64,000 bases of DNA from Haplodiscus bocki (taxonomy: Eukaryota): NCBI GenBank assembly GCA_965655095.1, contig OZ296650.1:133920001-133984000 (forward strand). Reading direction: 5' to 3'. Of this stretch, positions 9,450 to 57,949 are shown piece after piece. The position numbers and the translations under genes are program-made. The number at the start of each line of letters is the position of its first letter. The first letter of the stretch is position 1. Under the pieces are notes generated by a model. The model saw only the letters and a program-made list of their open reading frames with translations, was not told the origin of the DNA and made no database searches.

Positions 9450-10041
9450 CCAAAAAATTCGTCATAACCGTCATTTTTTTCGGCAAAGTGGCCGAAACTT
9501 TTTCATCTTCGGAAAATTGCCTTTGAAGTTATGGAGTCGATTTCATACTGGAGCCACTCCAAAGCGCAAACTAGGTAATTCAAAGTTGGAGCTATGACGA
9601 AATGATCAAATTTTGGCATTTTTTTCCAAATTTGATGCGTCATATCTCCACACTTATGACGAATTGGTAGAAAAATTTTACATGTGTGTAGCTCTTTGTT
9701 ATTCTGCTTCACACGAAAAGTTTCGGCCAAATGCATGTGGTTAATTGCAGGGCTGTTGGTTAAAAACTGCAAAAAATGGCCAAAAAACAGAATCATTCCG
9801 TCATAATTCCCCAACCAGTTTTGCTAGAATGATCTAACTTGCACCATTGTTCTTAGAATTGAAAGTTATGCCCGCATGCAAAGTTTGATCAAAATCGTAT
9901 GGGTGGGAGCTGAGATCGTTATTTTCCTATACCGTATTTGCATAGAGTTATTTCTTATATTTTAACGCGAGGCAAAGGGGCCCCTCCCCCGCCTCGCCAG
10001 GACCTATGAGGGGCGTAATCCCGTGACCACCCAGTGGAGGC
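9450..10041. repeat. Shared ~0.6-kb terminal module (CGTCAT iterons, GC hairpins, 18-bp core)
   Basis: The block recurs at ~10500-11089, ~11535-12124, ~12585-13173 and ~27315-27908, and in diverged form at ~42310-42914 and ~57345-57949. Confidence 0.9.
10024..10041. other. 18-bp junction core 1 (A1|S1)
   Basis: Exact TGACCACCCAGTGGAGGC. Confidence 0.95.
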
Positions 10042-10226
10042 ACCGGTGAAAATCACCAGGTGGCGGTCACTGGATATACACCTCTGAAAAAGGAAAAAAA
10101 CTACTAGTCTTTTCCTCGAACACAGTATTGATTTTTGCAAACGCATGTTTTATACATTGAAATTGAGCCGTTGAAATCTTCGTTGATATCAAAAAGACAT
10201 CGATGATGAAACTTGCGAACGCTTTG

Positions 10227-10275
10227 GCCCCGTTGTTTCTCCGTGCCGCTTCGCTAATCTACGAAACAACGGGGC
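10227..10275. repeat. 13-bp inverted repeat GCCCCGTTGTTTC/GAAACAACGGGGC with 23-nt spacer
   Basis: Perfect arms, repeated in S2 (11265-11313) and S3 (12311-12361). Confidence 0.9.
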
Positions 10276-11071
10276 GGGGCAATTAACAATTTGACTTTTG
10301 AGATTTTCCCCCTCAATTTTAGACCAAATTAAATATTACTTTTTTCCCAGAAAAACTTCAAAACTTCAGCCCACAAAAGATGCTAAACTTCAAAAGGCTG
10401 CACATTAAGACAATTCTGAAGAAAAACTGGCTGAAAAAATGCCAGATTTGAATTCTTTAATGAAAACTGTGTTTTTGAAAATTTTCATTTTTTTTCTGAA
10501 TTTTTCGTCATAACCGTCATTTTTTTCGGCATACTGGCCGAAAATTTTTTATCGTCAAAAAATTATCTTTCAAGATATGGAGTCAATTTCATACTGGAGC
10601 CACTCCAGAGCGCAAACTAGGTAATTCAATGTGGGAGCTATGACGAAATGATCAAATTTTGGCCTTTTTCTCCAAATTTGATGCGTCATATCTCTACACT
10701 TCGGACGAATTGGTAGAAACGTTTTTGCATGTGTGTAGCTCTTAGTTATTCTGCTTCACACAAAACGTTTCGGCCAAATGCATGTGGTTACTTGCAGGGC
10801 TGTCGCTTAAAAACTGCAAAAAAGGGCCAAAAAACAGAATCATCCCGTCATAATTCCCCAACCAGTTTTGCTAGAATGATCTAACTTGCACCATTGTTCA
10901 TAGAATTGTAAACTATGCCTGCATGCAAATTCTCATCAAAATCGTATGGGTGGGAGCTGAGATCGCAAATTCCCTATACCGTACGTGCGTATTTGTTATT
11001 TCTTATATTTTAACGCGAGGCAAAGGGGCCCCTCCCCCGCCTCGCCAGGACGTATGACGGGCGCAATCCCT

Positions 11072-11089
11072 TGACCACCCAGTGGAGGC
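11072..11089. other. 18-bp junction core 2 (S1|S2)
   Basis: Exact TGACCACCCAGTGGAGGC. Confidence 0.95.
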
Positions 11090-12124
11090 ACCACCAGGTG
11101 GCGGTCACTGGTTATGACATTCTGAAACTTTAACAAAATTGCAAGTCTTCTCTTTCAACACAGTAATGATTTTTGCAAATGCAACTTTTATATATTGAAA
11201 CTTAGCATGTGAAATCTTCACCGATATGGATGAGACATCGAGGATGGAGCTCGCAAACATTTTGGCCCCGTTGTTTCTCCGAGTCGCTTCGCTAATCTAC
11301 GAAACAACGGGGCGGGGCACTTAACATTTTCTTTTTCGAAAAATTTTTCCTCAAGTTTTTGCCAAACTTTGATTGTTTTCCCGAAACACTTCAGAACCTC
11401 AAACCACAAAAGGTGCTACAACTCAAAAAAACTTTGCAGTATGACAATTTTGGAGGAAAATTTGACCAAAAATTGCCAGAATCGAATTGTAGAATTAAAA
11501 CTGATTTTTTGTGTGAAAATTATTTTTTTTTCGAAAAATTCGTCATAACCGTCATTTTTTTCGGCAAACTGGCCGAAACTTTTTCATCGTCGAAAAATGT
11601 TCTTTCAAGTTATGGAGTTGATTTCATACTGGAGCCACTCCAGAGGGCAAACTATGCACTTGGATGTGGGAGCTATGACGAAATGGTCGATTTTCGGCAT
11701 TTTTTTCCAACTTTGATCCGTCATATCTCAACACCTATGACGAGTTGGCAGAAATTTTTTTGCATGCGTGTAGCCCTTAGTTATTCTGCTTCACACAAAA
11801 AGTTTCGGCCAAATGCATGTGGTTACTTGCAGGGCTGTCGGTAAAAAACTGCAAAATGAGGCCAAAAAACAGAATCATCCCGTCATAACTCCCCAACCAT
11901 TTTTGCTAGAATGATCTAACTTGCACCATTGATCATAGAATTGTAAACTATGCCTGCATGCAAAGTTTGATCAAAATCGTATGGGTGAGAGCTGAGATCG
12001 CAAATTCCCTATACCGTATGTGCGTATTTGTTATTTCTTATATTTTAACGCGAGGCAAAGGGGCCCCTCCCCCGCCTCGCAAGGACTAATGTGGGGCGCA
12101 ATCCCCTGACCACCCAGTGGAGGC
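11090..12124. mobile_element. Non-autonomous mini-element S2 (1035 bp), diverged variant
   Basis: Homologous to S1/S3 but more diverged. Lacks the 13-nt GGTGAAAATCACC hairpin at its start. Confidence 0.85.
12107..12124. other. 18-bp junction core 3 (S2|S3)
   Basis: Exact TGACCACCCAGTGGAGGC. Confidence 0.95.
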
Positions 12125-13173
12125 ACCGGTGAAAATCACCAGGTGGCGGTCACTGGATATACACCTCTGAAAAAGGAAAAAAAAACTACTAGTCTTTTCC
12201 TCGAACACAGTATTGATTTTTGCAAACGCATGTTTTATACATTGAAATTGAGCCGTTGAAATCTTCGTTGATATCAAAAAGACATCGATGATGAAACTTG
12301 CGAACGCTTTGGCCCCGTTGTTTCTCCGTGCCGCTTCGCTAATCTACGAAACAACGGGGCCGGGCAATTAACAATTTGACTTTTGAGATTTTCCCCCTCA
12401 ATTTTAGACCAAATTAAATATTACTTTTTTCCCAGAAAAACTTCAAAACTTCAACCAACGAAAGATGCTAAACTTCAAAAGGCTGCACATTAAGACAATT
12501 CTGAAGGACAACTGGCGGAATAAATGCCAGATTTGAATTCTTGAATTAAAACTGGGTTTTTGTAAATTTTCATTTTTTTTCTGAATTTTTCGTCATAACC
12601 GTCATTTTTTTCGGCATACTGGCCGAAAATTTTTTATCGTCGAAAAACTATCTTTCAAATTATGGGGTCAATTTCATACTGGGGCCACTCCAAAGCGCAA
12701 ACTAGGTAATTCAAAGTTGGAGCTATGACGAAATGATCAAATTTTGGCATTTTTTTCCAAATTTGATGTGTCATATCTCCACACTTATGACGAATTGGTA
12801 GAAAAATTTTACATGTGTGTAGCTCTTTGTTATTCTGCTTCACACGAAAAGTTTCGGCCAAATGCATGTGGTTAATTGCAGGGCTGTTGGTTAAAAACTG
12901 CAAAAAATGGCCAAAAAACAGAATCATTCCGTCATAATTCCCCAACCAGTTTTGCTAGAATGATCTAACTTGCACCATTGTTCATAGAATTGTAAACTAT
13001 GCCTGCATGCAAAGTCTCGTCAAAATCGTATGGGTGGGAGCTGAGATCGCAAATTCCCTATACCGTATGTTCGTATTTGTTATTTCTTATATTTTAACGC
13101 GAGGCAAAGGGGCCCCTCCCCCGCCTCGCCAGGACGTATGACGGGCGCAATCCCTTGACCACCCAGTGGAGGC
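12125..13173. mobile_element. Non-autonomous mini-element S3 (1049 bp)
   Basis: The 5' half is nearly identical to S1 and the unit ends in the terminal module plus 18-mer. Confidence 0.85.
13156..13173. other. 18-bp junction core 4 (S3|A2)
   Basis: Exact TGACCACCCAGTGGAGGC. Confidence 0.95.
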
Positions 13174-16100
13174 GACGGTGAAAATTACCAGAAGGCGGGA
13201 TTTTTTGCATCCAATTTTTTTTGCTGCATCATTTCTGGTGATTGGTTCTTTTTTCTAAAGGGTTGTTTTTATAAAAGGAAACTGTTGTTTTTTTATTTAC
13301 GATACCTTACTCCAGGCTGAAGAATAGCTCACACGACGCGGTAAAACTGATACATGGATACATGGACAGTTTGTCTCACACCGTAAGATTGCGTTTTTTC
13401 CGCAAAACGTATAGTTTTGTAGACTTTTTAAAAGTTGACAACAGCAGCAATGAAGGATGGCAAACATACTTTCTGGTCGATTTTTACACAAACTCAGGTC
13501 AAAACGGCGCTAATGTAACAAATTTTTAAAGTTGTCAGCTGCAGAAATAATATTTAACTTCACCCATTTACCCGTGACCGACTTACATAACAATGAACGT
13601 TTTCATTGGATAACCTTCCCATTTGTTTAATCCGGAATTTTTCAAAGAAATCATTGGCTTGCAGAATGGGTGATGTACCTGAAGCATTTCTTGGTGGTCC
13701 AACATACCGTTTTTTGTTCTTCAGAGAAACTATATTGGTGTTGCGGGCTCGTCCACGTCATTTGGCCTTTTTCATACATGAAAAAGTACAGTTAGGTGTT
13801 CTGTACCAGAGAAATTCATGAACAAAAAGTTCCGCGCCAAAACATTTCATCCATTATGTAACTATTTTATTCATGCACCGTTCAAAACGCATTAAATACG
13901 TTTAATGCGTCCAGAAGCAGAACAAAAGGATTAATGGTAACTAGCCATTTTCATCATTGACTTGAGACACTTGTCTCCATTGTCTCCATCAAGTCATCGT
14001 CAGCCATAGATTATGACAAGTTAAAGGCCACTTTGATGACGTATCAGTGCTGATAGTAGACTAAATGTGTGTCTTTCTTTTGTCAAGTGGTGAAATTCGT
14101 GCTTTGATTTTCCTGATTTTCAGCTTTTACCAACAATAAACGTGGTTAGTGAAAGGAATCGAAACAGTTTCTGAAGGTAACATGCTCAGTTAAAACGATG
14201 CTTCTTTACTATTGATGTCTTTCAAGAGTGGTTTCGATTTTAATAATTTTTTTCTTCTACAGACCGAACCAGAACTGTCGCGTTCCACAAACGTTTTTGC
14301 GTGAGGTTCTTGGAAGAGGCTATTCGGTCGGTTCCGACGCATACATAACGGAGTTTTACACTTATTCCAAAATAACTTTTGAATTTTGTGTAAAAAATTA
14401 CTTGTTGTCAGATAAAATGATCAGCGAACGAGCATGTTATGGATACGTTTTATTCTTGTGAAGTTTTGTCGAGGTTTCTTTTTGGATATTGCGTTTTTAT
14501 ATCAAATCGTAAATTGTTTCACGTGAACTCGGCATCGCCAATTTCCAATCCCGCATTTGAACCCTTTCATGTAGATACCTTTTCGTATGTGATAGAAACG
14601 TATGAACTGTTCATCCTGTAATTCCTGACTCACTGAAGTCTCAACTGATTTTGGTGAACAATTTTTGGCTTGTGTCGATAAATTCGGCGCATTAACTTTG
14701 GTAAATTACTTTGCTAACGTTTTCCTGGGAGAAGAGTGCTGTGTAACGCTTGTCAGAATCGCTGGCTGACTACTAATACTTTTCAATAATTTCTAAAACT
14801 AAAAGGGGGACTACGCTGTTATCATCGTACATGAAATGTTGAAATAGTTAATGGCGCATTGGAGACGTGGGAAATTGAAAAGTAAACAAAATAATCGTTA
14901 CTTTTAATGTATCCCCTTGGTTGCCAACGTTGACTGGCATTAGAGGAACAATTTCTACAGGTTCAACAAAGTTGAGCATATTATTGGTTTTGCTTAGGAG
15001 GAGAACTTGCTTTCATTTACTTTTTAACCGCCTGCGGCCTAAACACCGGTCACGTAACATTTAGTGTTCGCCATTCGTTAGCTGGTGAGTTTGGTGTCAG
15101 TCATGCGGTAAACTGAAAACAAGGGATAATTTCTTAGACAAACAGACCGTTTCCGCTGTCAGTGCGGGAATGAAAGATTACGTAACGTTCTTGTTTCACG
15201 CTTTTCAAATAAGGGTTTTATCTCTTTTCAACTGAGCAGTAAAACGCTGTAACATGATATCCTACTTTGTTCAACAGTTCAATGTCAGTTTAATTTAAGC
15301 TAATTTTTCATGTTCATTGCTTTAGATATATTTGCTGTTCTTATCGCCAACTACAGGACGGTTAAGTTTCCAGCAGTAAAAAGCAAGCTTCAGATTGATT
15401 GCCATTGTAGTCAGCTTGAAGTAAAGGCAGATAATTGTGTAGTCTGTGTCATTATAGGAAAATTCTTCATGATTTTCGGGTGCTCATTAAAAATAACGTT
15501 CGAATATATGAAAGGCAGATTAAACTTGAGTATTTTTTTGTTTTTGGTTGTGCTGTGCTGGCAGGGAAGAAAATGATGCAATTTTGCGTGTATCTGCAAA
15601 AGTTTAATTTCGTTTTTGTTTGTGTTTGCCAATTGTCACCATATTGAGTAAATTAATGACAAAAAGTGTGTTTCTCGTGCAGTTGTGTGAATGGTCTCTG
15701 TTTCATTCCACGTCAAAAGGGGGAAGTAATTGGCTGGTACCAATTATCGCAAGTGAAAGTTTTTGGGGAATTTTGACATACGCCTCCTTCCTGTAGGAGT
15801 TTGCTGGTTTTTGTTGCAGACCAAAACTTGCGACCTGAAGCCAAAGATTTTATATCGGCTTCTCTTTCTTGAAGGGTTAATTTGGAAAGTAGTTTATTGC
15901 TTCTTGTAAATGTTTAGAGACTTTCATTGTGTTTTCTATGTGCTTTGCCTGTAGGACTTTTGCTATTTGATGTCGGCACGAGTGAAGCACTATATGTAAA
16001 AGGCATCTTCCCAAAGCCTTGGTTTCGCTCAGAGGCCTTCGCAAAACCAAGGCGCTTCTGTTTTTCATTATTCAATTCGCAATGGAAACTGTAACCGTTA

Positions 16101-16338
16101 TGGAAACAGTCCTTTCCTAAAAACTTCAAAAAGGTTTGAAATGCGGAAAGGAATAAATATCACAGTCTGTATGTCGAATTTATAGCAGCCTCTGGAGCTC
16201 TATTTGTCGCAAATGGGTCCTTGGCGGCTTCAATTATCTGGGGTCTGTAATTTTTTTTGTGTTTCAAATAGGTATGGTAAATTTTGACATGCTGCTTCCC
16301 TTTTTTGTGCAATCAAACCTGCAACCAAAAAGCAAAAC

Positions 16339-19300
16339 ATGAAGCGTCGCCGTTGTACTTCTTGTGGACAATTTGCTGTTGCAAGCCATGTTTGCCTGAA
16401 GGACATTGATCGAGAACTGCAATCTGATGAGCCGCTGGGCATCTTATACAAAATTCCCGACATTTCAATCTCCGTTTCACCAGTTGCACGAAGTGAAACT
16501 CTGAACTGTCTCTCAACTTTAGGTCTAACTGATTTTTTAGTCTCTCTAGACGTTTCGATCGCAAATGACAGTATCATTTATAATTTGCGTCCGGCGCGTG
16601 TAACTGCGATTCTTGGCGATGGTAATTGCCTTTTCTCATCCTTAGCAGTTGCTCTCGGTTTGTCACAGGATTGTAGTTCAATTCTACGGAATATAATTGT
16701 TAGCAACATGATGTTCATCAACTTCCCTCCAAACAGCTTACAAACCACAATTTACTCCGCTGATTTTCCAAACCAATACCGTGTTTTGCTTTGTACTTCG
16801 ATTCAAGAGTACCTCAGTTTGTCGAAAATGGAAGAAAATGGAGTCTTCGGAACATGCGTTGAAATATACGCGTTTTGTCAGATTTTCCAAATGGACGTAT
16901 ATTTGTATCATGTTCCTCTGAAATCCTGGTTGGTTTATGAATGCTCTCTGAGCACGAATCGTCGTGGAATTTTCATTCAGCAAACCTGGAATGCAAATCA
17001 CTTTGAAGTAATCAGTGAGTTGGTTTCAGTCGCAAATGAAGAAAACGCTGCAGGTTCACAAAGAATTTCCTGTCTTAGTTCCAACGCAATGCATTTCTCT
17101 TCGTCAGTTTTGGGAGAGGATATTGAATCTTTCAGGTACCCAGAAAACACAACAGGGGTCCCACCAGCGAAAAAAGCAAAACACACTGCGGATCCATCCA
17201 CCTCGAAGACATGCCTTGAAACTCACGTCACACACATTCCAAGTCAGAACTCCTGTAACGCAAAGTCAGATCAAAATTTTCCGATGCTACCGTTGTCAGA
17301 AAACGCTACCAAATCTGTTCTGAGCAGAGAAATACCCAAAATCGAGGATCTGTACACTAACACTGCTACGGTTTCACACAGTGATGCAACAATTGAACAA
17401 ACGACAGATGGTAATTCTAAGTCTGCTGACGGAGAGTTTTGCGGCAAATGCTTGCGACAATCCACGCTGCAATATCCGTTAAAGCTTACTAAGACAGAAA
17501 AGTCAGATTTTATAAACAGAATGTTTGGTAACCGAATCAAGGACGCTTTTCCCATATTATGCAATCAATGTCTACTTTACTGTACTTCCGAACGCATCGA
17601 GTGGAGTCACGCATAGCCATCTGTTTTTTTCACGCTTTTGAGTGATGAAAAAATGCCCAAGGAGCAGCAGTTGAATGTTTTAACGTTGTTATCTTGGGAA
17701 CTGAGACAGCAATGGATGGGATGCTTGGAAAAATTTACTCCATGAGTCCAACAGTTTCTCAATGGGAAACAAATCAATGGGAAATGTGTCGTTGACGGAA
17801 CCGCTCGTTTGCATTATTTCCAGAAACTGATCAAAACTCTTCAACAAGAACAAATAGCAGTAGCTTTGGATAAAGAACCTTACCCGAACGTTCGGTGCCC
17901 ATTTGGTTGCTGGTGTTTCATTGAAGAATCCGGTTTAATCAATGCTAAACACTTTTTGAATCTATTCGACCCAGCTTTTACGTCTTTTGGAGCTTCTAGT
18001 CATTTGCATCTTAGAGGAATTAGGTCAGATTTCTTGGTTCCAACGTCATCGTTGCGGAAGTTTTTAATTGCAACAACTGTGCGTGTAGACAAAGTAGAAG
18101 GATTGGTTGTTCACGCTTGCCTTATGCACTCAAAGGGGTCGTCTGTGCAATACCTTCATCCTCCATCACATCCTGTCCTGTCAAGAACTGCGTTAATTCA
18201 CGATGAGCGTTTGAGTATGGTGGCACCAACAATTTCGTGGATAACAAATATTAAAGCAAATTTCGCCAGTCATACCTACCAGTTATTGAAAAGTGTTGGT
18301 TCTTATAGTGGAATGAGTACAGTTCAGTTGCGGCGGCGAACGCGTTGGGACATCACCAGCGATATCTTGTACCACGCTGAAGGCCTCGCGTGCCGTTTTC
18401 GGGAAGATGTTAAAACGAAGATTTGTGAATGGGTGAAAGAAGGTAAAATCGTTGAAGATGTAGCTTTGGGGATTCTTGACTATCCTGCACAGATTGAAAA
18501 CATATCAGAGTGTTTGTTGCCTGCCCTTTCTACAGATTTGGAGACTTGTGTAGAAATAGCTAAAGTTCTAGATAAAAATGATAAAGACTATTTAAACAAC
18601 GTGGAAGCTTTGAGTTGTTATTCCTTCGCCCACGGAACCGGCGAGTATGGTTGTTCGCCCCCTCCTCTGAATTGTAAAGGCAGCAATGTTTTTTGGCTTG
18701 TACAAGCTGCACTGTGTCTGTCACCGTTGATGTGTCGTTCTTTAGTAACATCAGATAAGTATTCTGTGACCTTGAGGCCTTTGATATCTTCGCTGAGGAA
18801 TGTTTTTATTACCTCAAAGGCAATGAAGAAAGCCAGCAATACGCTACTTCTACGGCGCTCGGAAGAAGCAATAAACACCTTGCTAGAGAAAAACCGAACT
18901 GAAGAGCAGTTAAAAGGTGTGAAGTACTGTTGTTGCCATCTCGCCGCACAGTTTTTGGCAACCGTGTCAGAGAATTTTTGCCACATCCCCTTAACGAATC
19001 GAAAAAATATAACTTGTTATACAAATCTGCAACTTCCCGTTGAAACAACTCACGCTATATTCACCACCAACTCCCCCAATAATTTGCGGAGCAAAAGCGA
19101 ACCTCCGCTAAAGTTGGTTATCAGCGATATCGGCTATGAACTGATTGCAGTCGGAGCAAAGGATGGAGGCCCGGCCGCCGAGCCAAGGTTGATGGTTCGA
19201 CATGGAGGTGACTTCCAGAAGTTCTGGCTTTTGGAGAAAAACTGCAGATACGCTAAGAAGATGACAGAGTCTAGAACTGAGGCTTTGAGTTCAGGTCTTC

Positions 19301-22300
19301 GTGGATATTGGACAATAGCAATTTATGAGAAATCAAGAAATCTTGAATTAGCTGATTTGAAATGGAAATTGCTGAGCACTTTGACTGGTCAGGGCGTCTT
19401 CATCTGTGAGTCTCATGACGTTCCTTTGACAAGAGACTTCAGAAAGAGCAGTTTTCGTTGTAGATGCACCCGTGCTTCTTTTTTCCGTTGCCCTTATTCC
19501 CAATGTAACAGTTGCGTATGCAAGCGTCACTTCAACGAAGGTCTACAGAATCCGAATAGACGTGTTCTTGTTGATCCAATGCCGATGTCGGAAAAGAGGG
19601 CAAATACGCATTTCTCTCCTGTTAATTCAGAGTCGTCTAGCTTGCGAGTTGTATCCGAAACATCATCTATTGTAGAGTCTATCGAATCAAGCGAGCCTGA
19701 TGCAGCAGCAATTGCCTTTGGTATGGTGTCCAACAACAATTTGTCTGTTGTTGGGGATTTTTCTTTGGAAGTTGACAACCATGAACCTCTTGAAGAAAGC
19801 ATAAATGTATTGGCTAGTCTCCAAACTTGCCCTGATAAAAAAGCTCTTTTCATTGATCCACATCGAAATGAAGACCTTTTCAAACTGCCACTTCACATTC
19901 TGCTCAATTCTCAATGCAACCTTTTGTACCGGCATAAAGGGAGTCCAATCAGTTTGTCGCTGAAAGAAAAACGTTTTTTAGAAAACATTGCAGCAACTTC
20001 CACGACAGCGCTGCCTCTAATTCAACCAGAAGCTCTTTTGTTTCCATCAATTTTCTGGTGTCAAGCTAACAACGGTAGTTTTCATGGAGCAATACCAGCC
20101 GCGCTTTACAACAACTCCAAGTACAACAGACAACTGGGTTTTGCTGGTTTGGAAGACATGCTTCGTACGAGAATCAAAGATGGTTCGCTGTTGACATCAT
20201 GCAATCCAACTTATTTGCAGTATGTGTTTGACAGCCTTTTGAACATGCAGCTTCACAAAACTGATGTTAGATTGGTTTTAAATCGGGGATGGCAGGAAGT
20301 GAGTTCCGGCCCTACAAATTGTTCATTTGTTTCAACGCAAACATTCAAGTTTGACTGTGCGGAAAGTCGTAAAAATGTCTGTGAACTCGCAGCTTTAATT
20401 CGAGATAAAAATCCAACGTACTTTTTGACATATACTTGCAGCCAGTCGACCCATCCTGGCGTTAGAAAAATTTTTCAGGCACTCTATGAAATGTACCCAC
20501 CAGAAACTACAAAAAAAGAACTGCTCTCTGCGGCCATTCAAGCAGAATTGATGCCGATGCTCAGGTGTTGGTATAGAGCTTCACAATACGTAATGGAGTG
20601 GGTGAAAAAATCTCCAGAAAGACCACTGGGACCGGTATCCCACATTTGGATGCGGTATGAATGGCAGGAGGAGACAGCTGGGTTCCCTCATTTGCATGTG
20701 ATACTTTGTACTCCAGAAGACAAGTTTTCTAATGAGGTGAGATCTCGAGTTTGCTGTTCAAAAGAAACATTTTTGGGTGCATTAGAAAGCAGTTGCCCTC
20801 AATTAACGAAAGACGAAAGGTTGCATCTCGGTGAGTTATTTCAAAAGTATCAAATTCATAACTGTACCAAAGGGCGTCAGCGATGCCATAAAAAAACAGA
20901 TCGTCTCAATCAGCCAATTTGTCGTGTGCCAAGATATCCACCATCGAATGCATTTTCGTTCAAAAAAGTTCCCATTAACTTCTCTTCTGAAACAATGGAC
21001 TTGTTACAAGCCATGGACTTAGCAGACATTGACGTTAACACGTTGTTGCCGAAGGTCAAAGACCCTCTAATTGCCGGGAAGCATCACTATCCGACTGTGT
21101 CTAACGAGCATTTCTCGCCAACCAATGCAGCTTTGTTTGCACTGACTCAATCAAGCACTAACGTTCAAATTTGCGACGATTACACGGCACCCCGTTACGT
21201 TGCGAAGTATGCAGCGGGCATTGAATCTCGAGCAGCAGCCACAATTGTTGCAGGTCAGACAGAGAACAGTGTAAAGGTTCTGACAGAACCGATAGAACAT
21301 GAGAAGATAGCAGGTGTTCGAGCTTGTTTGAAAAATTTGCGTCAGGAAGAGAAACGACAATCAGTAAAAGGTCGCATTGTCAGTATTACTGAATGTCTTT
21401 GGTGGTGCTTACAACTTCCTTACGTCTGCACAAATGTTGACTTTGTACATGTGCCTACAGTTCCCAAAGAATATCGTTCAGGAATTGTAATTGAGAAACG
21501 TTTTCACAAGTCTCCGAATTTCAGCGCCACTTTCACTGATGGAATCCGTGTGCGAAAAGAATTATTGGAACTCCCAAAACTTCGACAATTTACAAAAAGT
21601 CAAACCCTCCTCCTTGCAGATGTTGAAAACAGTTTCATTTCTCCTGACAAGGTAACTGTTTTTGGACTGAGGCCGCCGGAACTTTTATTCGTATCGCAGT
21701 TAAAAGACTATTACAGCTGGTTTGTGCGCTGGAAACCCAGAAGAACAAACTGCCTTAGCAATCACGAGAAGTTCTTGAAAAAAGGTTTACGTAAAAGCTG
21801 CTGGGTTGATGCACTTGGATATTTGGTTAAACTGCGCCCATCTGCTGTTAACTCTTTCGTAAGTCTCTGTCAAGAAAAGTTTGGTGAAGAACGGAATCAG
21901 ATCTTGAAACGCGAAATGAGGAAACACATTGTTCCCATTCTTGAAAACAAGAACAGTTCTCAGTTCGTTGCTCATTGGAAAAACTTGTCAGAAGAAGAGG
22001 CCGTTGTTGTTTTCAGCAACAGTCTACCGAATAACCCAACAAAGTTTTTACTTCATCTGTTACTGACCGTCGGGAAACTTGACACTGAGTTGGACATCTT
22101 GAACGTCCAAACTTTCAAAGAAGCTTTCATAAAAGCGGGTATTTTGCTAAACTCAACCGTAACTGATGGCGAAGTGAAAGAAATAGCTAAGAAGTATTTG
22201 CTGGAACAGCTTCGCTTCACTCCAGGGTCATCTAAATTGATTGACACTTACTTGGTAATGGCCCATAGTGTCATATCGGAGGCACTGTTGATAAACAATC

Positions 22301-43100: not shown

Positions 43101-43146
43101 AAGAAAAACCATTGAATAAAAGTAAGAAAAACCATTGAATAAAAGT
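43101..43146. repeat. 23-bp tandem duplication private to B2
   Basis: AAGAAAAACCATTGAATAAAAGT x2; the homologous stretch is single-copy in B1 and B3. Confidence 0.85.
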
Positions 43147-46053: not shown

Positions 46054-46689
46054 TCAAAAAACTATGGGAAAAATATATTGCTGCTTATCCTCCAAATTGT
46101 CAATAAAACAAAAACCAAAAGTCAAAACACTAACTTTGTTTCGAAGATTATTGCGTCTATTCCGGCAGCGACGCAAGGTCAAGTCCTGCAAGCCATTGTT
46201 CAACAGCGCTCTAGATAGCATATGATTCTCTAGCACGCTATTCACGTGCAGATCTTTACTTTCATCTAGTAAAATTTTGTACCGTTTTGATAAAATCGAT
46301 TTCATTTTCAAGAAAATAATTCCTGTTGGACAATTTTCCAAGAGCTCGTTTAAATTATGTGCTCCTGATCGTGGCAAATAGGAAAAGGCCACGACATTGA
46401 ATTTTCTCAAGTAGGCCAGTTTACTGAAAAAAGCCTCAGGACTCATTGCCGGATTCTTCTTGCTTGACAAAGAGTTATTGACAGCATCATGCCAAATGAT
46501 AACCTTTCTTCCATTCGTGATGCAGAAATTCGATTCAAGGAGATAACATATGTTTTTTTCTGGCTGGCAGTTATTCAGCGAAGCACCCGAAATTGCATAA
46601 AATTGTGACTTGAAAGGATCAAAGAGGTGAGGTTTCTCCTGTGCTGCCCAATAAAGGGACGAGGCCGCCAAAACAAAATATTCAGACAT
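46054..46689 (-). CDS. SGNH-hydrolase-like protein (211 aa)
   Basis: Homolog of 30991-31644 with the motif blocks retained (KDLHVN). Confidence 0.65.
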   Translation of the reverse strand: MSEYFVLAASSLYWAAQEKPHLFDPFKSQFYAISGASLNNCQPEKNICYLLESNFCITNGRKVIIWHDAVNNSLSSKKNPAMSPEAFFSKLAYLRKFNVVAFSYLPRSGAHNLNELLENCPTGIIFLKMKSILSKRYKILLDESKDLHVNSVLENHMLSRALLNNGLQDLTLRRCRNRRNNLRNKVSVLTFGFCFIDNLEDKQQYIFPIVF

Positions 46690-48026: not shown

Positions 48027-51000
48027 CTAAAAAATTTGCATGCAATCACATTGCAGGGCTGTTTCGATGCCCGTAACTTTATACGAATCCATCAGAACAT
48101 GGCATTCTGATAAGTAATCTGCAAGCGTTAGGTTCACATTCGAATAATTGTGATTAACCATTGCTCTTTGCCAATCCTGTTCGAAAGAATAACGGCTTCG
48201 CGAAACAGCGTTGGAAAACCCCGTCACGTAAGCAACTAAAGCCCAGGGTCTTCTTTCAACAGGCTTTGTGAATGCGCTCCCATTTCCCGAATTATGCTCC
48301 TGCAACCGTCGCCGCAACCTCCTACAGCTTCCAATGTAAAATAGTTCCCGGTGTTTAACACTCACCAACAAATAACAGTAACCAATTGCCGAAAGGGGTA
48401 CATCGAAAACACGTAAAGGAAAGGGATAAAATGTCTGGGTCGTTGAAACACCGGAATTACAACTGCCACGAGACGACAGAAAGTTATTTATCAAAGGTAC
48501 CAAATGGCTATCTTTGCGGCAAAGAAGATTAATTGCATCAAGTGTCCGCTGCTTGTCGCCAACAAACGTTATGTGGGAAAGATCAGCGACCCGACTAACG
48601 ACTACATAAAGCTGCTCTTTCAGCCAGTAGGAGAATTTTTTACCACCAACAATCTGTGTGGCCAAGCTTGGAACAGTGTCACCCATTATTTTGTGAACTG
48701 TTGACGCTACATACATTTTCAAAGGAAATTGAACACGTCTGCAAACAGTGGAATTGTTATACTTATGGAGAACGCCAATTCTTTTACGAACAACTACAAG
48801 CCTCCAGAAATTAACGTCCGGGTTGTTAGATGACACAGACCTTACTCCGGCTGGTGCAACTCTAACAACAATGTGAGGATCAATTTCATCGAACGATTCA
48901 ACTAAACACAATTGTCCCTGAAACAGTTTCAGCGATGGCAAATTGCAAGTTAAGCGCAATACACACCCAACATGTATAAACAAAGACTCCGGCTCAAGGC
49001 AACTTCTGTTGAGAAACTTGCTGACGGGTGTTGTTGCAGTAACCCAATTTTGAGTTCCTGTATTAGACATTTCATCCTTGCATTGGAAAGGCACACTCTG
49101 TATGTTTTGATGTGTTGTCACAATAGCTATTCTCTCTTCCACAGCCTCTTTTTCCGCAACTCTAGTACTGAACACTCTCAAACTATCCAGAGGGACTACA
49201 GACCAAGTGCTTACAAAATTACAGAATTTCTCAATTATTTCACAACACTCTTTAGCACATGCTTCTGTCACAGGATATTGAGACAGCAAGTCCAGAACTC
49301 TCTTTCCTTGTTGGTTCTGCATCCTCACATAGTGCTTCAAATACCGAACCTCGAAATTAGCTAACACCGAGTTGCTCAGCAAAAGGAATGTTCCCGTAGG
49401 AGGCGGAAGTTGACGAAAATCACCTGTGCAAATAACAATCTTTCCTCCAAAAGGAACATTGTTTTCAGACACGGCTTGCAACACATTGTCCATTGCGGAC
49501 CAAAGTTCAGCTGAAATCAATGAGACTTCCTCGACAAAAAAAACATCCAAACTCTCCAAAAAAGTAAATTTTACAGGATCACGAGCAAGACTGTTCAATG
49601 CATGCGAAACTAGATGACTCACCGTTTCATTTTGAACGACGGGAAAAGGGATTAAAGCGTTTATGTGTCTTCCGCCGAAAACTGAAGCTCTCTCCGCAGC
49701 GACACTAGTTATGACGCGTCTCAATCCCCTAGCTAAAGCCGCAATAACACAATGAATCAGCACATGGCTCTTTCCTGTACCTGGTGGACCAACTATGAAC
49801 TGATGTTTAATAAAGGCAGTCGTACAAGAACAATAATTGTCGTACAAAGAACAAACCTTATCCAAAATATTCTGTTGATCATGCAATGATTCGTCAGTCT
49901 GGTTGCGCGCTTTATGTATCTTCTGGCTCCAAGTCAAAGGACGTGCTAAGGTGGCGTTCATCAATTCTGCATAAGTTGGTAAACCAACATAACCCCCATT
50001 GACAATTGCACACAGAAGACTCTCTTTCTGCGCATTTAATTCGTCTGAAATGTTGCTGTCACTCTGCTCCACAATACTCTATTCTAAAACGCGCGGTGTT
50101 GAGCAGGGAAAAACGAATGAATTATTTTGTGCTGCTTGCTGGATGCACAAATACGCACTTGTAACAAATCGATCCAGTAAAGTAGATGATCCTGGATAAT
50201 AGCGTAATTGTTCAAGCACAAAGCGCCGAACAACATCAATAATTTCGGAATCTTCGCATCCCAAAGGAGACCTTGCTAAAGAAGCCTCGAAAAAAGCAGA
50301 TTTCATATTCGATTGGGAAAAAATGTCAAGTTCGGTTACGTATTCTCCAAGAGACAACAGAATGTGGGTCAAAAAATTGGTTGTGTTCCTCGGAACAACG
50401 TTCGATAAAACTACTTGAGTTTGACAAGCCTTTTTCTCATAAATGAACTTGTGACTTGAACTGCTCGTTGTACATGCAATGGCTTCACGACATTGCGTGG
50501 AGAAACGAGGGACCCCACTAGAAAAGTTGCGACAGTAGTTGAAAAAAGCTTCTTTGTACAAGTAATTAAGGTATATGCAATAGCCGAGGCCATCCACCCA
50601 ACAAGACTTAGTTACATTTTTCTTTAGTAAACTTTCTGGTGTCACCTTTAAGGGCTTTCGGAACCGGCTGAACCAAGTGAAATAGTTTTCCACTTTGAGC
50701 ACAAAAGTTAGTTCAGGGGGTCGTACACCAAAAACTGTTATCTTGTCAGGACAAAGAGAACTTTTTTCTGCATCAATTATCAGCAGCTTCTGATTTAACG
50801 TGAAGCAACGGTGAGGAGGAAAGCCCTTGCTGTGTCTAATGGAAATCTGTCGCCCGAAAAGAAGACCTTGATTGCTATTAGAGAGTCTGCCCTTCGGTTC
50901 AATGACTATTCCAGCCCGTTTCTCTCGCGGGGCAGTGACAACGTGAATGAATTGTATATTGGTCACCACGTAAGGAAATCGCAATGACCACCACACGGAT

Positions 51001-54000
51001 TCCGTTAAACTCAAAATGCGAGAGTTCACACACTTTTTCTTCGGCTTTCCCTCCTTGTTCATATTGGTCAAGTATGCCCCAGCAATTTTGTTGTTCACTT
51101 GTTGATCAACCTGGAAGTCATACAAATCTGTCCCACTTGACGTAGAAATAGAAACTTCGGTGCGTTCCTCCACGCCTGCAACATATTTTGACAGATAACG
51201 GCTACTCATGTAAATGTCGCAAATTTGTAGATTGGTGCTAGATCGGACGAGGGCAAAAATTTTGGCGTTTGTTGGGGAAATGTGCGTGTTAATTTCTGTT
51301 GGATAATGATGCTTGCCACCACAAAGACGCTGATCAATGGTGACGGAACAATCAAAGTCACTCGACTCAGCTAATCCGATCTTCTCCAAAACTGCTATCG
51401 TTTCCTCCGACAATTCCTTGTGAATACATTTGTAGGTAAAACTAGCACAAGGAGGGTATTTGGGTACTCGGCAGATTTTTTCTTTCAATCTGTCTGTTTT
51501 TTTCTGACAACGAAATTTAGCTTTAAAACAGCTGTGGGATTGGTAACGGTTGAACAGTTCTCGTAACTCGTTCAAATCGTCCAAACTATATTTGTGCGAA
51601 CCAACTTCAGTCAATAAGTTCCCCAGAAAAGTTGTTGCCGAGCAACAAACTCTAGACCTTACTGCTTCACTAAAGCGATCTTCTGCCGTCCAAATCAAAG
51701 CATGTACATGAGGGAACCCACTAGCTTCATCTTGAAACTCATATCGATACCAAATCTTAATAACCTTTCCCAGTGGCTGCTCGGGCGACGTTTCAATGTA
51801 CTTCATGACAAGACGAGAAGCTCGTTCCCAGGCTCTCAACATGGTGACCATTTCAGATTGAATTGCTGATTTTCGGTCCTCCTCTTTACATAAGTCTTTC
51901 GGAAACTTTGCGTCCAACGCACAAAAAATTTTCCTCAAGCCAGGATGCGTGGACTGCCCACAAGTGTAAGTGAAAAAATATGTAGCTGGTCGTTCTTTCA
52001 AAGCTGCTCCCAATTCATTGACATTCTTCCGAGAATCGCATTGATCAAAGAAAATGGCTCCTTCTCGCATGGCATGTACATTTTTTCTTTGCCGTGCCGC
52101 TTCACTCCAACCTCTGTTCAAAACTATTCTCGTGTCATTGACACGCAGCTGTAGGTTAAATATTGTGTCAAATACGTATTGGACGTAACGAGGATCTGTT
52201 GACGTCAGCAGAGATGAATCTTTCAAACGCGTCTGTAAATGTTGTTCTAGGCTTGCGAATCCGAGCAATTCGTTTTGTTTGTGATCATTATACAAGGGAG
52301 AAGGTATTGCACCCGAATAACTGCCGTCTGTATTTTGGTGCCAGAAGATGGACGGAAACAACATGGCTTCCGGCTGAAGCAAAGGGACAGAATTAGGGGG
52401 CGACGTTGCGGTGATATTCTCCAAAAATCTTTTGTGTCTAGCTGCAACATACAACGGAGACCCTTTACTCCTTTTCAGTAAGCCGCATTGACCATTCAAT
52501 AAAACATGTAGTGGGAGCTGAAAATCAGTACTGTCTATTCGGAAATCATGTTCCAAAACAACAGTTGAATCTCCAGCAGCAGTTGTAACAGGCAGCGAAA
52601 CATGCGATACCTCAGAATCTTCCTCTAAAAGCCCAGGGTTGGTAACAAATTCCGAGGACGCGACCGTGTTGGTAGGCGATCTGGACCAATTCTGTGAATC
52701 AACAGAAACACGGCTACAGCTACAATCATCTAACTGACTTGAACCGCACGCTGAATTTTTTGTGGACTCAACAAAGGTTCTTTTTTTACCATCATAAACA
52801 ACCTGCCTTTCCTGACCTTCATCTTTGGAATGCATTCTGCAAACACTTGCCAAACAACCAGACACTGGACAACGTAAAAAAGAACTTCTACCACATGAGC
52901 ATTTAAAACCACTGGAAGGAAAATCACGGGTGAGTAACAGAGAATGGTTCTTACAAAAGAATTTTCCTTGACCTGCCAGTGTTTCAAAATATTTTGACCG
53001 CAGCTCATCAATATCAGCAGACGTCTGTCGATAGTAAACGCAGATATTCCAATAATCATTAATAAAATGATCAACCGCTGTATCAGAAGGCAGCCTCACC
53101 TGTTCAGGGAAAACATTTTTGTTTTTGTACGCCCAAAAACTTTGAAAGACACCACCATGCCTCAAAAGGATGTTATTACGAGTCGCTAAACGTTCAGTAG
53201 CAATAAACTTCAACTCGAAAACGGACTGAGCAGTTTGAAAGTTCAGAGGAGCTTTGAATTTAGAACGCAAAGTATTTACTCCCGCGTATGAAAAAAGTAT
53301 GACATTTACACCATCAAATTCCCGAGTTTCCAAAAAGTGCAAAACATCTTGACGGCTTGCTACGTCTTCATGAATGACATCTTCACAAAATTGTGAGACA
53401 CCGAAACTGAGGCAACGAGATGGACTTTCCGGAAATCTTGTAAACAACTCCGACAGTTAATCACTCATAGAAGCATCGACGGTTTTCTTTTTGCAGCGAC
53501 TGAACCTCGGAAAAATTACAGGGTCCAAGAAATGCAGCAAAGGAAAGATCGCATTATCAACAGCAGCTGCATCAGATATAGATCGACACAGTTGGGGAGA
53601 GATGCAGAATAAAGTTTGCAACAACGACAAAAAGTATGTCTTGCAGCTCAAAATTTTTGGAGGAGAGGAACCAAACGAATTCGGAGGCTGAGCGAACGTC
53701 ACAGACTTGAATTTTGCGCACAAGCGTTGTCCGTCAGTCAATCCAGGAGAAGTGAATAAACGATAAGTATCCGTTATAGACACACTTGTTGATGCAGAAA
53801 TACAAGCAGCCGACTGTTCAATGTTGGGTTTACTTTGAATGCTTTGTCGGATTTCATCAGTTGTTTCGCCAGAGGACACTAAGTTATTCAAAAAATACTG
53901 AATATCGCTTCGGTAAAAACTGCATTGAGATTCCGCCTTCACTAATAAATCCGAAGTAATATCCCAACGGCGTTTAGAGCTCAAGCGAATGCTGCTAATG

Positions 54001-56363
54001 CCTGAATAATTACCGACAGCTTTCAACAACTGGAAAGTGTGGCTAGCGTAATTCGCTTTGGCATTCTTCAAAATACGCAAATTTGGAGCAACAAATGCTA
54101 ATCTGTCGTTGGTAGGAACACTCAGACGTCCTAGAGACGGGTGTGCAGGTGGGTGAAGATACTGCAGGTGAGAACCATTGTTATGCTGCACACAAGTTCC
54201 TATAACAAGGCCATATGCCTCGTTAACACTGACAAAGCCGGAAACATCAAACGCATCCAAAATTTTCATTGGTTTCAACCAATCGTGTCTTGCACCTCGC
54301 AAATGGTTCAAGTAATCAGAGCTGAACGATGTGAATGAAGGCAAAATCCCATTTACAAGGTGGTTGAAACCGATTTGACCTGTTTCTTCAACAAATGTGA
54401 AACAACCGAACGGACATCTACAATTTGGATAACATTCACTATCTAAGGCTTCCTCCAAATCAGTGAAATTGCCCGAACTTACTTTGTTCAGAAAAACTTC
54501 CTTCCGTTTTGTTATATCAACTAGAACAGCTCGATGACCCATTGAAACAGCAGGATGCAACTGATGACACATAGCCCAACTGTCTCGTATTTCGGGAGGT
54601 AAAAAAGAAACAAGTTTTTTCATAGTACAATCTCGAATGCTGAGATCTTTCAGTAACGAATGTATTACGGAAGGCCAAGCATACCGCCAACAATTTCCGT
54701 CGCCATTGTAATTGAAACAACTTTGGCAGACCAAACAGGTAGCAGTAGGTCGCAAACCGAATCTCCTTCGTTTGATTGCTCTTTTTTCGAGAGTTTGCCA
54801 TTGCAAAGGATAAGCAGGAGTTGAAATTCGACAACATTTACCGCAAATTTCTCTATTTTGTGCTTTGTCGGCTGGAAAAGTGGACGTGAAAACACAATAG
54901 TCACTCGAGGCATCCTCATGACGACACGCGTTATCTTTCTCTACAATAATTGTGGCTGTGTCATTGTGTGCGGATTGAGTGGATTGAATCGCCTGAGGCA
55001 GCGCAGTGAAGCAAACATTTGGGTTGAACGGATCACAATTGGAACCACTTTTTTCACAATCAGTTTCCACTACGCTTAAGGAATTGTTGCTGGGCAACAA
55101 AAAGTCGTTGTGCATACCGCCCAATCCAATAGAGAATGATGTGAGGCCTTCATCGCACAAATGGTGCAAAACCTTAAATTCAGAACATGCACCATGTTTT
55201 GACGAACAAGTGTTCATTTGGAATGATGTGGAAATCAGAGTTCTTCGTGGTGTCGTTTCTGTGAATGAACTCTGGAGGCAGCCATGAGGCAACAATTGCT
55301 GAGAAATTGGAATTTCTACTGCCAGCACTGCTACCGTTTCAAAATGGTTACCTGCGTGAGTATGTACCAAGAAGACAGATGGAACGTCCATTGAAGCACG
55401 ATCTCCAGCATAGCTATAAACTAACCACAACTTTGTCATGCAATGGTACACAAAAACATCAACCATCGCAATTTGGGCAAAACCATAGATCTCTACACAA
55501 GTGCCATACACACCATTTGATCGCATTCCGGAACGATTCAAATATTCGTTCACGTTTGAAGCTGTCTGTACCACAATATTTCCATCAACGGTTGTGTAAA
55601 TTTCAAAAAACTGCGGAGGAATATCTAGTGAAGGTAAGGCCGAACAAATACGCTGGCGTAATTTTGAATGATACCAAGCTTGTGAGCCAATTGACAACGC
55701 TAACGCCGAGAACAAACAATTACCGTCACTTGGAACAGGATGAGTTTGTGATGGAACCAAACTGTTCAAAGAATTGGCACCCAACAAATGTGTGTTCATT
55801 GGTTTCCCCACAAACGGTATTCCCAACTCAATGCAAACTCTCGTCAAATTAGCGATTGTGCAAGAAAAAGCTGTTGAATTCGGCACGTTCGAGAAAAGAC
55901 TCATGTTATTGAATGGCGCACACGACAGCGACCGATCAAAGTAGTCATCACCAACTGAGGCTTTTACCATGGATGATTGGAAACAAGAGCAGTCTTTGCT
56001 GCCATAAAAACGCCCACACGTTACGCATTTCCTGGGCTCTCTGCAGAATTTCTTTTTTTTTGGCGGGCCAGGGTTGGTTTCTATACCACTTCTCAACAGA
56101 AACAAAAGCAACATTCTGCGAGTCATGGAAACGTCACCAGAAGTGCCGATCCTCAGAAACTGCAACTGATCCTGAAGAAACACAGAAACATAAAATTCCC
56201 CAACGGTGACGTCTGAGCTGAAGACTTCACCAACATTGTTCACATAAACAAGTCCATCTTTTTCCAAAACTGTCGATAAAGAGGACCAAATCATCAACAA
56301 AGTTAAACAAAGTGAGTACACCATTTTCTGAAAATGAGATTCGTCAAGACTCTGCACACTCAT
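48027..56363 (-). pseudogene. Family B polyprotein copy 2, two in-frame stops
   Basis: ORFs 53457-56369, 50079-53447 and 48027-50072 are in one frame, with stops at 53457-53459 and 50079-50081. Confidence 0.9.
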
Positions 56364-57931
56364 CAACACTCAGTGGCGTCGCCTACATCTATGAAACTCA
56401 GTCAAAGATGAATTTGAAAAAGCCATTTGCGTTACACAAAGATATTCTATCGAAACGAACTTCAAATAGAGTTGGAGCATTTGAATTCAAAACATTTACT
56501 GTATTGAATAATTGAAGCTCAGCAGTTAATATATGAACTGTCTCTTGAGTGACTTTTCGTTTTTAAAGGCGAAGATACCACGCATGAGTGATTTGAGCAA
56601 GACTTTGAGTACTTGAAAAAATGATTAGTTAAATACGATTGAAATTCAAAACAGAATGAGGACTGTTGGTGTTGAACACCAAACAAAACAAACTGCTGAG
56701 TAAGTGTAGTCTCAATATAAACCATGTCGAATTCCAAAGTGATGCTTGTTGAACGCCAACCATAGACTGTCCAAAAAGTTGACAATTACAAAACACACTC
56801 CAACGTACAATGCACAAAAGAGGTTAAACTCTCGTAATGCAAACATGAAAAGTTCAAACACTGCTGTTTCCTACGAAGAAACATAAAAAAGAAAACGAAA
56901 GAACCTCATTTTTGCTCAGAACAATAAAACAACAAACCAACATTTCCTGGCAAACAATTGAAATTGAATGCAAAACTAATTGCATTTTTTTTTAATTTTC
57001 AAAATGCATGACACGTAATGGAAACATTTATTGCATTCCACAACCAAAAAACAGCCCCGATTCATGATTTAATTTATGTATGACATTATACTTGATGAGA
57101 GGAAAGGCAACATTAAAAAATGTAACTTACATAAGTAACGCCTAACTAGTTTAAATTTGAGTTTAGCTAAAAAAAACTGTGTCAAATGAAGCAAAACACG
57201 GTAAAAGTGTCAACAAGTACCTGTCTAGAAAAAGTGTAACCTTGTTAGGCGCATTTTACGCGCAAAACGATCATTTCCGGCAATTTTAGGCGCATTTTAC
57301 GCGCAAAGCGATCATTTCCAAAAAAAAAAATTTTTTTCACAAAAACATCCGTCATTTCCGTCATGTTCTTCACGTCATATCCGTCATTTTTTTTCGGCAT
57401 CTTGACCGAAAATTTCTGACTAACCAAAATCAATTGCCCGTTCAGTTTTGGCATCCTTAGCGAAGGCTAGCATACGAGAAAAAGTTGGTTTTGGCGATCA
57501 AAAATGACGGAATGACGCATTTTTTGCAAAAATCCAAAAATTCATCAGCGCCTATCTCCCGAACGAAAACGGCTGGGCCAAAAATTTTTGGCATGCAAAT
57601 TGTTTAAATCATTTGTGCCTCACACACAAATTTTGGGCTGATTGTATCGGGTCGATGTGGAACTAGAGCGATGAGAATTCAAAATCGGGGCAAAAAACAC
57701 GATCATTCCGTCATAACTCATCACGTTGTGAATGGAAAAAGTTTTTTCCCTCCTCCCCTTTCTTACCTCGTCATTTTATGACCGCATGCAAATTATGAAG
57801 AAATTCTATCGGGTAGGACCCGAGATCGGCTTCCCAGACCTACCATGCGGTATGATGAAAATTTATCGATTATTTTTTAACCTCGGCAGCGGGACCCTAC
57901 CCGGCCTCGGATTCTAAGAAGGTTACATCCC

Positions 57932-57949
57932 TGACCACCCAGTGGAGGC
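57932..57949. other. 18-bp junction core 7 (B2|B3)
   Basis: Exact TGACCACCCAGTGGAGGC. Confidence 0.95.

Follow-up and report, generated by a model that had tools for sequence, protein, structure and literature searches.

The 64-kb window analyzed here (64,000 nt; positions 133,920,001 to 133,984,000 of contig OZ296650.1, assembly GCA_965655095.1 from Haplodiscus bocki; coordinates below count from its first nucleotide) contains a head-to-tail array of putative Helentron-like rolling-circle transposons whose units meet at one 18-nt sequence, TGACCACCCAGTGGAGGC. Two families of large units, A (14.7 kb) and B (15.0 kb), are interspersed with ~1-kb mini units (S), in the order A1 (partial), S1, S2, S3, A2, B1, B2 and B3 (partial) (Table 1). 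Seven exact copies of the 18-mer were found, all on the + strand, and a search of the whole window on either strand at ≤2 mismatches gave no further match; none is expected by chance (0 matches in 100 dinucleotide shuffles). An earlier reading made from the sequence alone (the sequence-only reading) had placed the 18-mer at all unit boundaries, and exact search and self-comparison of the window, together with inspection of the flanks, agree that the seven positions coincide exactly with them. Spacer DNA is absent at every boundary, including the heterologous ones (A/S, S/A and A/B), where the same reading had already noted its absence, and the family changes across the 18-mer. Public sequencing runs containing window sequence include coral and coral-reef metagenomes.

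Two other assemblies and a coral metagenome contig supplied ten related loci of the same architecture (designated below by L numbers). Relatives of the B polyprotein, all from European Nucleotide Archive (ENA) long-read assemblies, share 26–57% identity with it and carry Rep, Pif1 and GIY-YIG domains, and the ten loci surround such proteins. The exact 18-mer is present at L003, a locus with a transposase of only 57% identity at which two ~1.04-kb minis likewise lie between large units, and the 18-mer or one-mismatch variants occur at L005, L006, L028, L029, L031 and L032. Invariance of the 18-mer, as first proposed, is thus a property of the window; across the lineage several positions vary, and the site consensus is (T/G/C)GACC(A/C)CC^(C/T)AG(T/C)(G/T)GAGG(C/T/A).

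Position of the seam

From comparison of its flanks, the 18-mer is best described as a head-to-tail seam, in which nucleotides 1–8 (TGACCACC) are the 3' terminus, or right terminal sequence (RTS), of one unit and nucleotides 9–18 (CAGTGGAGGC) the 5' terminus, or left terminal sequence (LTS), of the next. The joint had been predicted to lie within the 18-mer, and it was resolved to a single nucleotide, ...GACCACC^CAGTGGAGG..., between nucleotides 8 and 9 (ACC^(C/T)AG), by several independent configurations. A solitary 15.5-kb copy at L002 is bounded by host ...AAATCATC^CAGTGGAGGC... on its left and ...TGACCACC^CAGCAAACTT... host on its right. Arrays end in ...TGACCACC^CAGGAACC at L028 and in ...TGACCCCC^GAGGTAAT at L032. 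At L001, the TGACCACC of a B unit abuts position 441 inside a second B unit (^GAGAATTTC), a product either of array insertion at a pseudo-site within a B copy or of aberrant joining; this joint lies at oriented position 19919, equivalent to window position 28332, at AAAC^GAG. Finally, at L031 and L006 this same RTS octamer, at the ends of CAG-type units and minis, precedes heads of a further family (T; TAGC...). Given that CAG- and TAG-type heads follow the same octamer, the trinucleotide after ACC belongs to the downstream unit, and the element termini are 5'-CAGTGGAGG (or TAGC...) and ...GACCACC-3'.

CAG is present on both sides of the L002 copy. This can be read as insertion without duplication, with CAG as the LTS start, a reading favored by the TAG-type joints; a CAG target-site duplication was set aside as the less favored reading, as CAG goes with CAGTGG heads and TAG with T-family heads. 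Similarly, TGACCACC^TAGCCGG at L006 was considered as an array end in host DNA and discarded on finding that it is the start of a T-family unit. The non-element DNA that follows RTS ends starts with CAG or GAG in four of four cases (CAG, CAG, GAG, GAG); the probability of AG at +2 and +3 in all four is ~1.5e-5 by a post hoc test. The sole complete host target, ATCATC^CAG at L002, resembles the joint ACCACC^CAG, in keeping with mimicry of the nick site by the target.

Free assortment of tails and heads

A census of the window and the ten loci gave 38 right ends, of which 34 are joined to an LTS and the remaining 4 abut non-element DNA. These ends comprise 14 tail classes and 19 head classes (4 of the latter being non-LTS flanks) in 28 combinations. 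B-type tails are followed by B, by A' or by non-element DNA, S/A1-type tails by four head types, and the C1 head is found behind two tail types. All seams of one locus lie on one strand, and the joint falls at the ACC^YAG bond in every case. The sequence-only reading had named rare heterologous joints, or crossovers outside the core, as evidence that would count against it; neither was observed, since heterologous joints are the rule and no crossover lies outside the core.

Young copies were repeatedly found behind unrelated neighbors. B1-type copies are 99.7–99.9% identical, yet stand behind A2, B2, B1 and B'', a third B subfamily that is 89–91% identical to the others. In the window, B1 and B3, at 99.8% mutual identity, lie on either side of the old B2 unit with its broken open reading frame (ORF). 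Two A' copies that match at 99.5% over 18 kb have unrelated left neighbors, a mini with a B-type tail in one case and an S-type tail in the other. C1 occurs as a solitary copy and in two different arrays. At L028, an old B'' precedes a young B1 that is followed by host CAG, the layout expected from insertion at an RTS^host boundary. Among Logan contigs of other runs (window 25000–30900 compared with public runs), some begin exactly at 27891 and others change partner at 27908/9 to an S-type head; in a run from another organism, a different tail type is joined to the identical B head at 27891.

Tails do not always follow the relationships of their units. The A1 tail (9416–10031) is 88–92% identical to the adjacent S tails versus 83% to the A2 tail (27283–27898), with A bodies 93–96% alike, and the A' tail and the tail of the adjoining mini share 92.5% identity (L032 23600–25262). 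Such similarities point to local exchange, or to a local origin of tails, within arrays.

A conserved right-end module

The 18-mer is not all that A, B and S units have in common, as ~600 bp upstream of the seam is also homologous in all of them. This non-coding module closes every unit in a fixed orientation, even where the coding body is inverted; its identity is ~70% between A and B and 83–92% between A and S. An alignment of 17 unit types (55% mean column identity) revealed conserved blocks over ~600 nt before the seam, with similarity at background level upstream of the module and beyond +40. Columns without variation include the seam motif GACC.CC.AG..GAGG and, ~40–55 nt ahead of the seam, GGGNCCCTCCCC; GCATGCAAA... 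and ATCG are further invariant blocks. No reading frame is open across all tails. Depth of tail words in host runs was 2–10 times that of the A body and 20–40 times that of the B body, and in a coral metagenome of 2017 the ratio of tail to A body reached ~50. Tail-bearing units therefore far outnumber autonomous ones, and the non-autonomous ones among them seem very abundant.

In most tail classes, a 3–5-bp G/C hairpin ends 0–2 nt before (T)GACCACC. Some compensatory changes were seen in this hairpin (GAGTA/TACTC versus GGGTA/TACCC); its folding energy was not significant. In addition, GGAGGC of the LTS is complementary to GCCTC in an invariant tail block that precedes the short hairpin, ~30–35 nt from the 3' terminus. 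Helentron/Helitron2 elements have asymmetric terminal inverted repeats, one at the 5' terminus and one ahead of the 3' hairpin; the match in this lineage is of only 5–6 nt, without covariation (m6 and M units). The module is far longer than known Helitron terminal signals and might serve as a single-strand origin or a landing pad for Rep. Taken together, the 18-nt seam, the adjacent short hairpin and the conserved tail block constitute a defined substrate for direct biochemistry.

Coding content of the units

Judged by their predicted proteins, the units are Helentron-like rolling-circle elements that encode a single OTU-Rep-Pif1-GIY-YIG polyprotein. In family A, ORFs for OTU, Rep and Pif1/GIY-YIG lie on the + strand. 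Translated comparison showed the coding body of family B to be inverted relative to A, while the tail and the 18-mer keep the same orientation. The B ORF matched the Pfam families Helitron_like_N (31.6 bits; cut-off 28.9), PIF1 (49.9 bits), OTU and GIY-YIG, and its Rep region contains the three HUH-Rep motifs, the two-tyrosine (Y..Y) motif included: YFFTYTC, FPHVHALIW and YMSSRYLSKYVAK. A search of the Protein Data Bank (PDB) returned Pif1 structures (E 1e-9 to 1e-15) and the helicase region of Helraiser (E 1e-7). The B ORF therefore carries the hallmark of Helitron-like elements (HLE), a Rep (HUH) domain followed by a Pif1-like SF1B helicase in one protein. The C-terminal GIY-YIG domain (PF01541, 37.5 bits) is SLX1-like (E 1e-8 in the PDB search), and the polyprotein gave no match to a C-terminal AP endonuclease (Exo_endo_phos, PF03372).

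The A2 polyprotein (17809–24408) is interrupted once, between 22692 and 22699. Accessory ORFs of 330/336 and 217 amino acids, conserved after the polyprotein in both families and in relatives, had no Pfam match.

Table 1. Units, joints, right-end modules and ORFs of the array, in window coordinates
Feature	Position	Strand	Remarks
Unit A1, 5' part beyond window edge	1..10031	+	Body 95.8% identical to A2; last ~616 nt nearer neighboring S tails
Joint A1/S1	10024..10041	+	RTS terminus TGACCACC (10024-10031) ^ LTS start CAGTGGAGGC (10032-10041)
Mini units S1, S2, S3 (1048, 1035, 1049 bp), non-coding	10032..13163	+	Family-specific ~400-nt 5' part and ~620-nt common tail module
Joint S1/S2	11072..11089	+	The two minis 84% alike
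Joint S2/S3	12107..12124	+	Exact 18-mer
Joint S3/A2	13156..13173	+	Exact 18-mer
Unit A2, 14,735 bp	13164..27898	+	LTS, ORFs, tail module
A2 OTU ORF	16339-17616	+	
A2 Rep ORF	17809-22692	+	
A2 ORF, Pif1 C-terminal part and GIY-YIG	22699-24408	+	
A2 ORF, 336 amino acids	25258-26268	+	
Right-end module, example (A2)	27283..27898	+	Conserved blocks including GGGNCCCTCCCC, short G/C hairpin, then TGACCACC
Right-end modules, other units	9416-10031, 10464-11079, 11499-12114, 12548-13163, 42289-42904, 57324-57939	+	
Joint A2/B1, heterologous	27891..27908	+	Proteins ~44% alike, coding bodies oppositely oriented; Logan contigs start exactly at 27891
Unit B1, 15,006 bp	27899..42904	Terminal sequences +, genes -	Intact polyprotein
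B1 ORF, 330 amino acids	29055-30047	-	
B1 ORF, 217 amino acids	30991-31644	-	
B1 OTU-Rep-Pif1-GIY-YIG ORF	32986-41328	-	Intact, 2780 codons
Joint B1/B2	42897..42914	+	Subfamilies 91% alike
Unit B2, 15,035 bp, older subfamily	42905..57939	+ (genes -)	Polyprotein broken
B2 polyprotein (48027-56369) in three ORFs	48027-50072, 50079-53447, 53457-56369	All -	
Joint B2/B3	57932..57949	+	B3 99.8% identical to B1
Unit B3, cut by window end	57940..64000+	+	99.8% identical to B1

A model for joining at resident right ends

Helitron-like elements are thought to choose their targets by a dinucleotide only, and tandem arrays are usually ascribed to missed terminators. The seam described here is long, conserved between genomes whose transposases are 57% identical, and used across many families and size classes. 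Such precise stitching of families implies that the element's own enzyme probably joins new copies to old ends, with a site specificity unusual for the class. The best explanation for the anatomy of the arrays, the seam position, the way tails and heads assort freely, the shared orientation and the young copies behind unrelated neighbors, and one that we hold to be likely, is that the 18-mer is the seam of a Helentron-like lineage in coral-associated assemblies, at which Rep joins any LTS to a resident RTS end.

The following sequence of events can be envisaged. Rep would recognize the right-end module and cut after ACC where (C/G/T)AG follows, as at normal termination. When bearing the 5' end of any mobilized unit, it would use a resident RTS end as target, in a termination-type cleavage on a foreign RTS, whether the latter is followed by host C/GAG or by the CAG of another unit. 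The incoming LTS would be ligated to the resident RTS and the incoming RTS to the former downstream DNA, to give RTSx/LTSnew...RTSnew/Y, and repeated rounds would generate co-oriented, spacer-free arrays of mixed families. Ordinary host sites, C^(C/G)AG, would be used more rarely. One speculative role for the fused SLX1-like GIY-YIG domain is in processing the second strand, or branched structures, at the seam. From established HUH chemistry, together with the RTS-LTS junctions and donor circles of Helraiser (PMC5876387), we infer that Rep makes the joints, on the chromosome and with the top strand active, and that circles integrate into chromosomal joints; this mechanism is plausible and consistent with all of the data. 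The sequence-only reading had gone further in naming the 18-mer as the preferred target. The evidence favors the RTS end, even where it precedes host DNA, over the full 18-mer.

More tentatively, and as a possibility that we would stop short of calling probable, the HUH transposase may perform true site-specific integration, recognizing the 600-bp module of any relative in residence, cutting at ACC^SAG and inserting the unit, so that autonomous elements and their parasites come together in mixed, co-oriented arrays, which may in turn release many circles per Rep loading. If Rep does target resident right ends, site-specific integration by an HUH enzyme of eukaryotes would become open to testing, and the lineage would represent an HUH-based analog, in an animal-associated genome, of integron or oriT-specific recombination. 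Such targeting would also explain the physical linkage of autonomous elements and ~1-kb parasites, allow large repeat arrays to grow without unequal crossing-over, and offer a natural template for seam-specific single-strand DNA integration.

Several observations weigh against joining at resident ends. Only one insertion has both host flanks, and the 5' half of the target is represented by one or two examples. A pair of filled and empty joints was not found among the loci fetched, and the ratio of arrays to solitary copies is biased, as the loci were retrieved around intact relatives of the B polyprotein. A potential CCAC-CCA-GTGG hairpin around the nick is weak and is lost in TAG-type and CAGCGG joints, and single-stranded DNA folds of the junctions were no better than shuffles in five of six cases, the exception being the A/S type. 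A hairpin at the nick was accordingly dismissed as a requirement: the 4-bp CCAC/GTGG stem appears in centroid folds, but it is not conserved across joint types and the folds resemble those of shuffles. Given that the A1 tail is nearer the S tails, arrays also undergo local exchange unrelated to integration. Finally, homotypic runs (B1/B1/dB1, m/m/m and T/T/T) could equally be rolling-circle concatemers.

The last point leads to the alternative that the joints are made off the chromosome, such that concatemers or hetero-multimeric circles, with RTS and LTS ligated by Rep, integrate as blocks at C^SAG and are then amplified locally. The homotypic runs are near-identical (B1/B1/dB1 at L001, 99.8–99.9%; three m units at L006; T/T/T at L031), and B1 and B3 display a 30-kb higher-order similarity. 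Moreover, Helraiser circles replicate and serve as donors (PMC5876387), formation off the chromosome is the usual account of tandem Helitron arrays in bats, silkworm and plants (PMC4067079, PMC11934779), and hetero-multimers followed by block transposition yield the same end product. Nevertheless, the young B1, A' and C1 copies are flanked by much older, unrelated units that differ by locus, whereas blocks require equally young passengers, and the 28 tail/head combinations in 38 ends would demand very frequent hetero-ligation. We consider this origin of the joints unlikely; under it, the 18-mer would still be the nick site but not a chromosomal target.

Considerably less likely is an origin in tandem duplication followed by homologous or microhomology recombination and gene conversion in the 600-bp tail, of which the 18-mer would simply be the best-conserved stretch. 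The tail is common to all units, and the affinities of the A1 and A' tails for those of adjacent minis suggest exchange among neighbors. By contrast, the switch occurs at the same phosphodiester bond in 34/34 joints, including CAG- and TAG-type heads without downstream similarity; A and B tails, at ~70%, are too dissimilar for efficient homologous recombination; and the solitary copy and the array ends that stop exactly at ACC are left unexplained. Least credible of all, and barely worth entertaining, is that the 18-mer is a host multicopy gene or repeat targeted by the elements, as in the site-specific targeting of host telomeric repeats proposed for Paramecium Helitrons (PMC13085455), or that the arrays are an assembly artefact, as the ~3-fold depth of the L001 contig over its neighbors might suggest, given that the L002 copy splits the 18-mer between its ends and leaves CAG alone as host-derived, that no Rfam family matches in the window and the motif is absent from viral and prokaryote-rich collections beyond chance matches and one genuine coral metagenome contig, and that the same joints recur in three long-read assemblies, a Joint Genome Institute (JGI) contig and Logan contigs of several runs.

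Comparison with known systems

The closest known family is Helentron/Helitron2 (HLE2), judged by shared features and best named matches. The shared features are a single transposase that combines Rep with a Pif1 helicase, preceded by an OTU domain and followed by a nuclease at the C-terminus, and non-autonomous partners that share termini with autonomous copies and outnumber them (PMC3627910, PMC4067079). Orientation of the coding region relative to the termini also varies in Helitron2/Helentron (PMC3627910, PMC4067079) and in Paramecium Helitrons (PMC13085455). The best named protein matches were fish Helentrons, remote at E 8e-9 or weaker over ~16% of the query. The nuclease, however, is an SLX1-like GIY-YIG domain rather than the AP endonuclease of Helentrons; a GIY-YIG domain in an HLE2 family is the subject of one report, as a capture (PMC11417382). 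Furthermore, the termini are CAG...ACC and the target C^(C/G)AG, whereas HLE2 inserts at T^T (or between T and C); the two sites here, a small sample, are ATC^CAG (L002) and AAC^GAG (L001). Helentron right ends have a few dozen conserved bases, as opposed to the ~600-bp module of this lineage, in which a conserved 16–18-nt seam and mixed-family, spacer-free arrays are normal. Assignment to HLE1 (5'-TC, CTRR-3', A/T target) is at odds with termini of CAG/TAGC and GACCACC and a target of ATCATC^CAG.

The Helraiser transposase forms and re-cleaves precise RTS-LTS junctions, on the top strand, and the circles act as donors (PMC5876387). The 18-mer of the window is the equivalent of this junction. 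Helraiser differs in its ends (5'-TC / CTAG-3'), its A^T target, the absence of preference for resident ends and the attribution of its arrays to terminator bypass. Head-to-tail Helitron arrays are known in Myotis, Bombyx, maize and Arabidopsis centromeres (PMC4067079, PMC5876387, PMC11934779), and distantly related Helitrons can lie side by side (PMC4067079; Xiong et al. 2016 as cited in PMC11934779). In those arrays adjacency can follow from the minimal AT target, whereas the long seam, free assortment and young copies behind old ends of the present lineage point to specific recognition of right ends.

Among prokaryotes, IS91/ISCR, IS200/IS605 (IS608) and relaxases are HUH enzymes with targets similar to the site of their own cleavage; certain relaxases, TrwC among them, can insert a transferred strand at a resident nick site, and IS91 yields one-ended and tandem products. 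These systems lack a fused Pif1 helicase or GIY-YIG domain, and mixed arrays of autonomous with mini elements are not known from them. The arrays had also been called integron-like. As in integrons, heterologous units gather in one orientation through a single short site, possibly as folded single-stranded DNA. Integrons, however, rely on a tyrosine recombinase, a fixed attI platform with its promoter and attC sites, none of which is present: no IntI tyrosine recombinase domain was detected among the ORFs scanned in the window, units could enter at any joint or right end, and the joints are RTS/LTS transposon seams, so the analogy goes too far. Within the literature consulted, the coverage of which is incomplete, no description was found of a conserved 16–18-nt seam, a shared 600-bp right-end module or systematic mixed arrays.

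Non-autonomous units and distant relatives

Lineage members fall into size classes, autonomous units of 15–18 kb (with genes in either orientation) and non-autonomous units of ~1.0, 1.4, 2.7 and 4.9 kb. The S units contain no consistent ORF and no ORF is common to minis or tails; with no Rfam family matching anywhere in the window, retrozymes or other known RNAs were rejected as an identity for the minis. Minis with CAGTGG heads are all 1025–1049 bp long (window 10032–13163; L003 6709–8818, minus strand; L006 ~1070–4180, minus strand; L029 5158–6182), a range that extends to L031 (~24355–25390, minus strand) and L032 (24221–25262). Overall identity between the mini lineages of the two genomes is only ~49%, and the first ~400 nt at the 5' end hardly align at all. 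For a transposon passenger such uniform length is unexpected, and it may reflect a size constraint.

The T family consists of 1.4–2.7-kb units with heads TAGC(T/G)G.. and tails ending in (A/G)ACCACC, at L031 (minus strand; oriented 708–26465) and L006 (oriented 20745); its units form runs of their own and joints to CAG-type units. Scans of viral sequences (IMG/VR) with the 16-mer core gave chance matches in unrelated DNA only, and prokaryote-rich collections likewise did not contain the motif beyond chance matches and a single coral metagenome contig (L015, below). No recognizable seam or tail was found in the more distant families L004 and L007 (42–43% protein identity). The most distant protein relative, L030 (ENA k119_741605, 11,385 bp), has no terminal overlap and no related seam; this and the chance nature of the IMG/VR matches led to the rejection of episomal or viral relatives. 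A scan of JGI metagenomes, by contrast with the viral scans, gave one genuine match, an S/A-like joint in a coral metagenome contig (L015). The most distant relatives (26% identity, with Pif1 and GIY-YIG; the cluster of P0017) are found on many short-read metagenome contigs of 8–12.5 kb.

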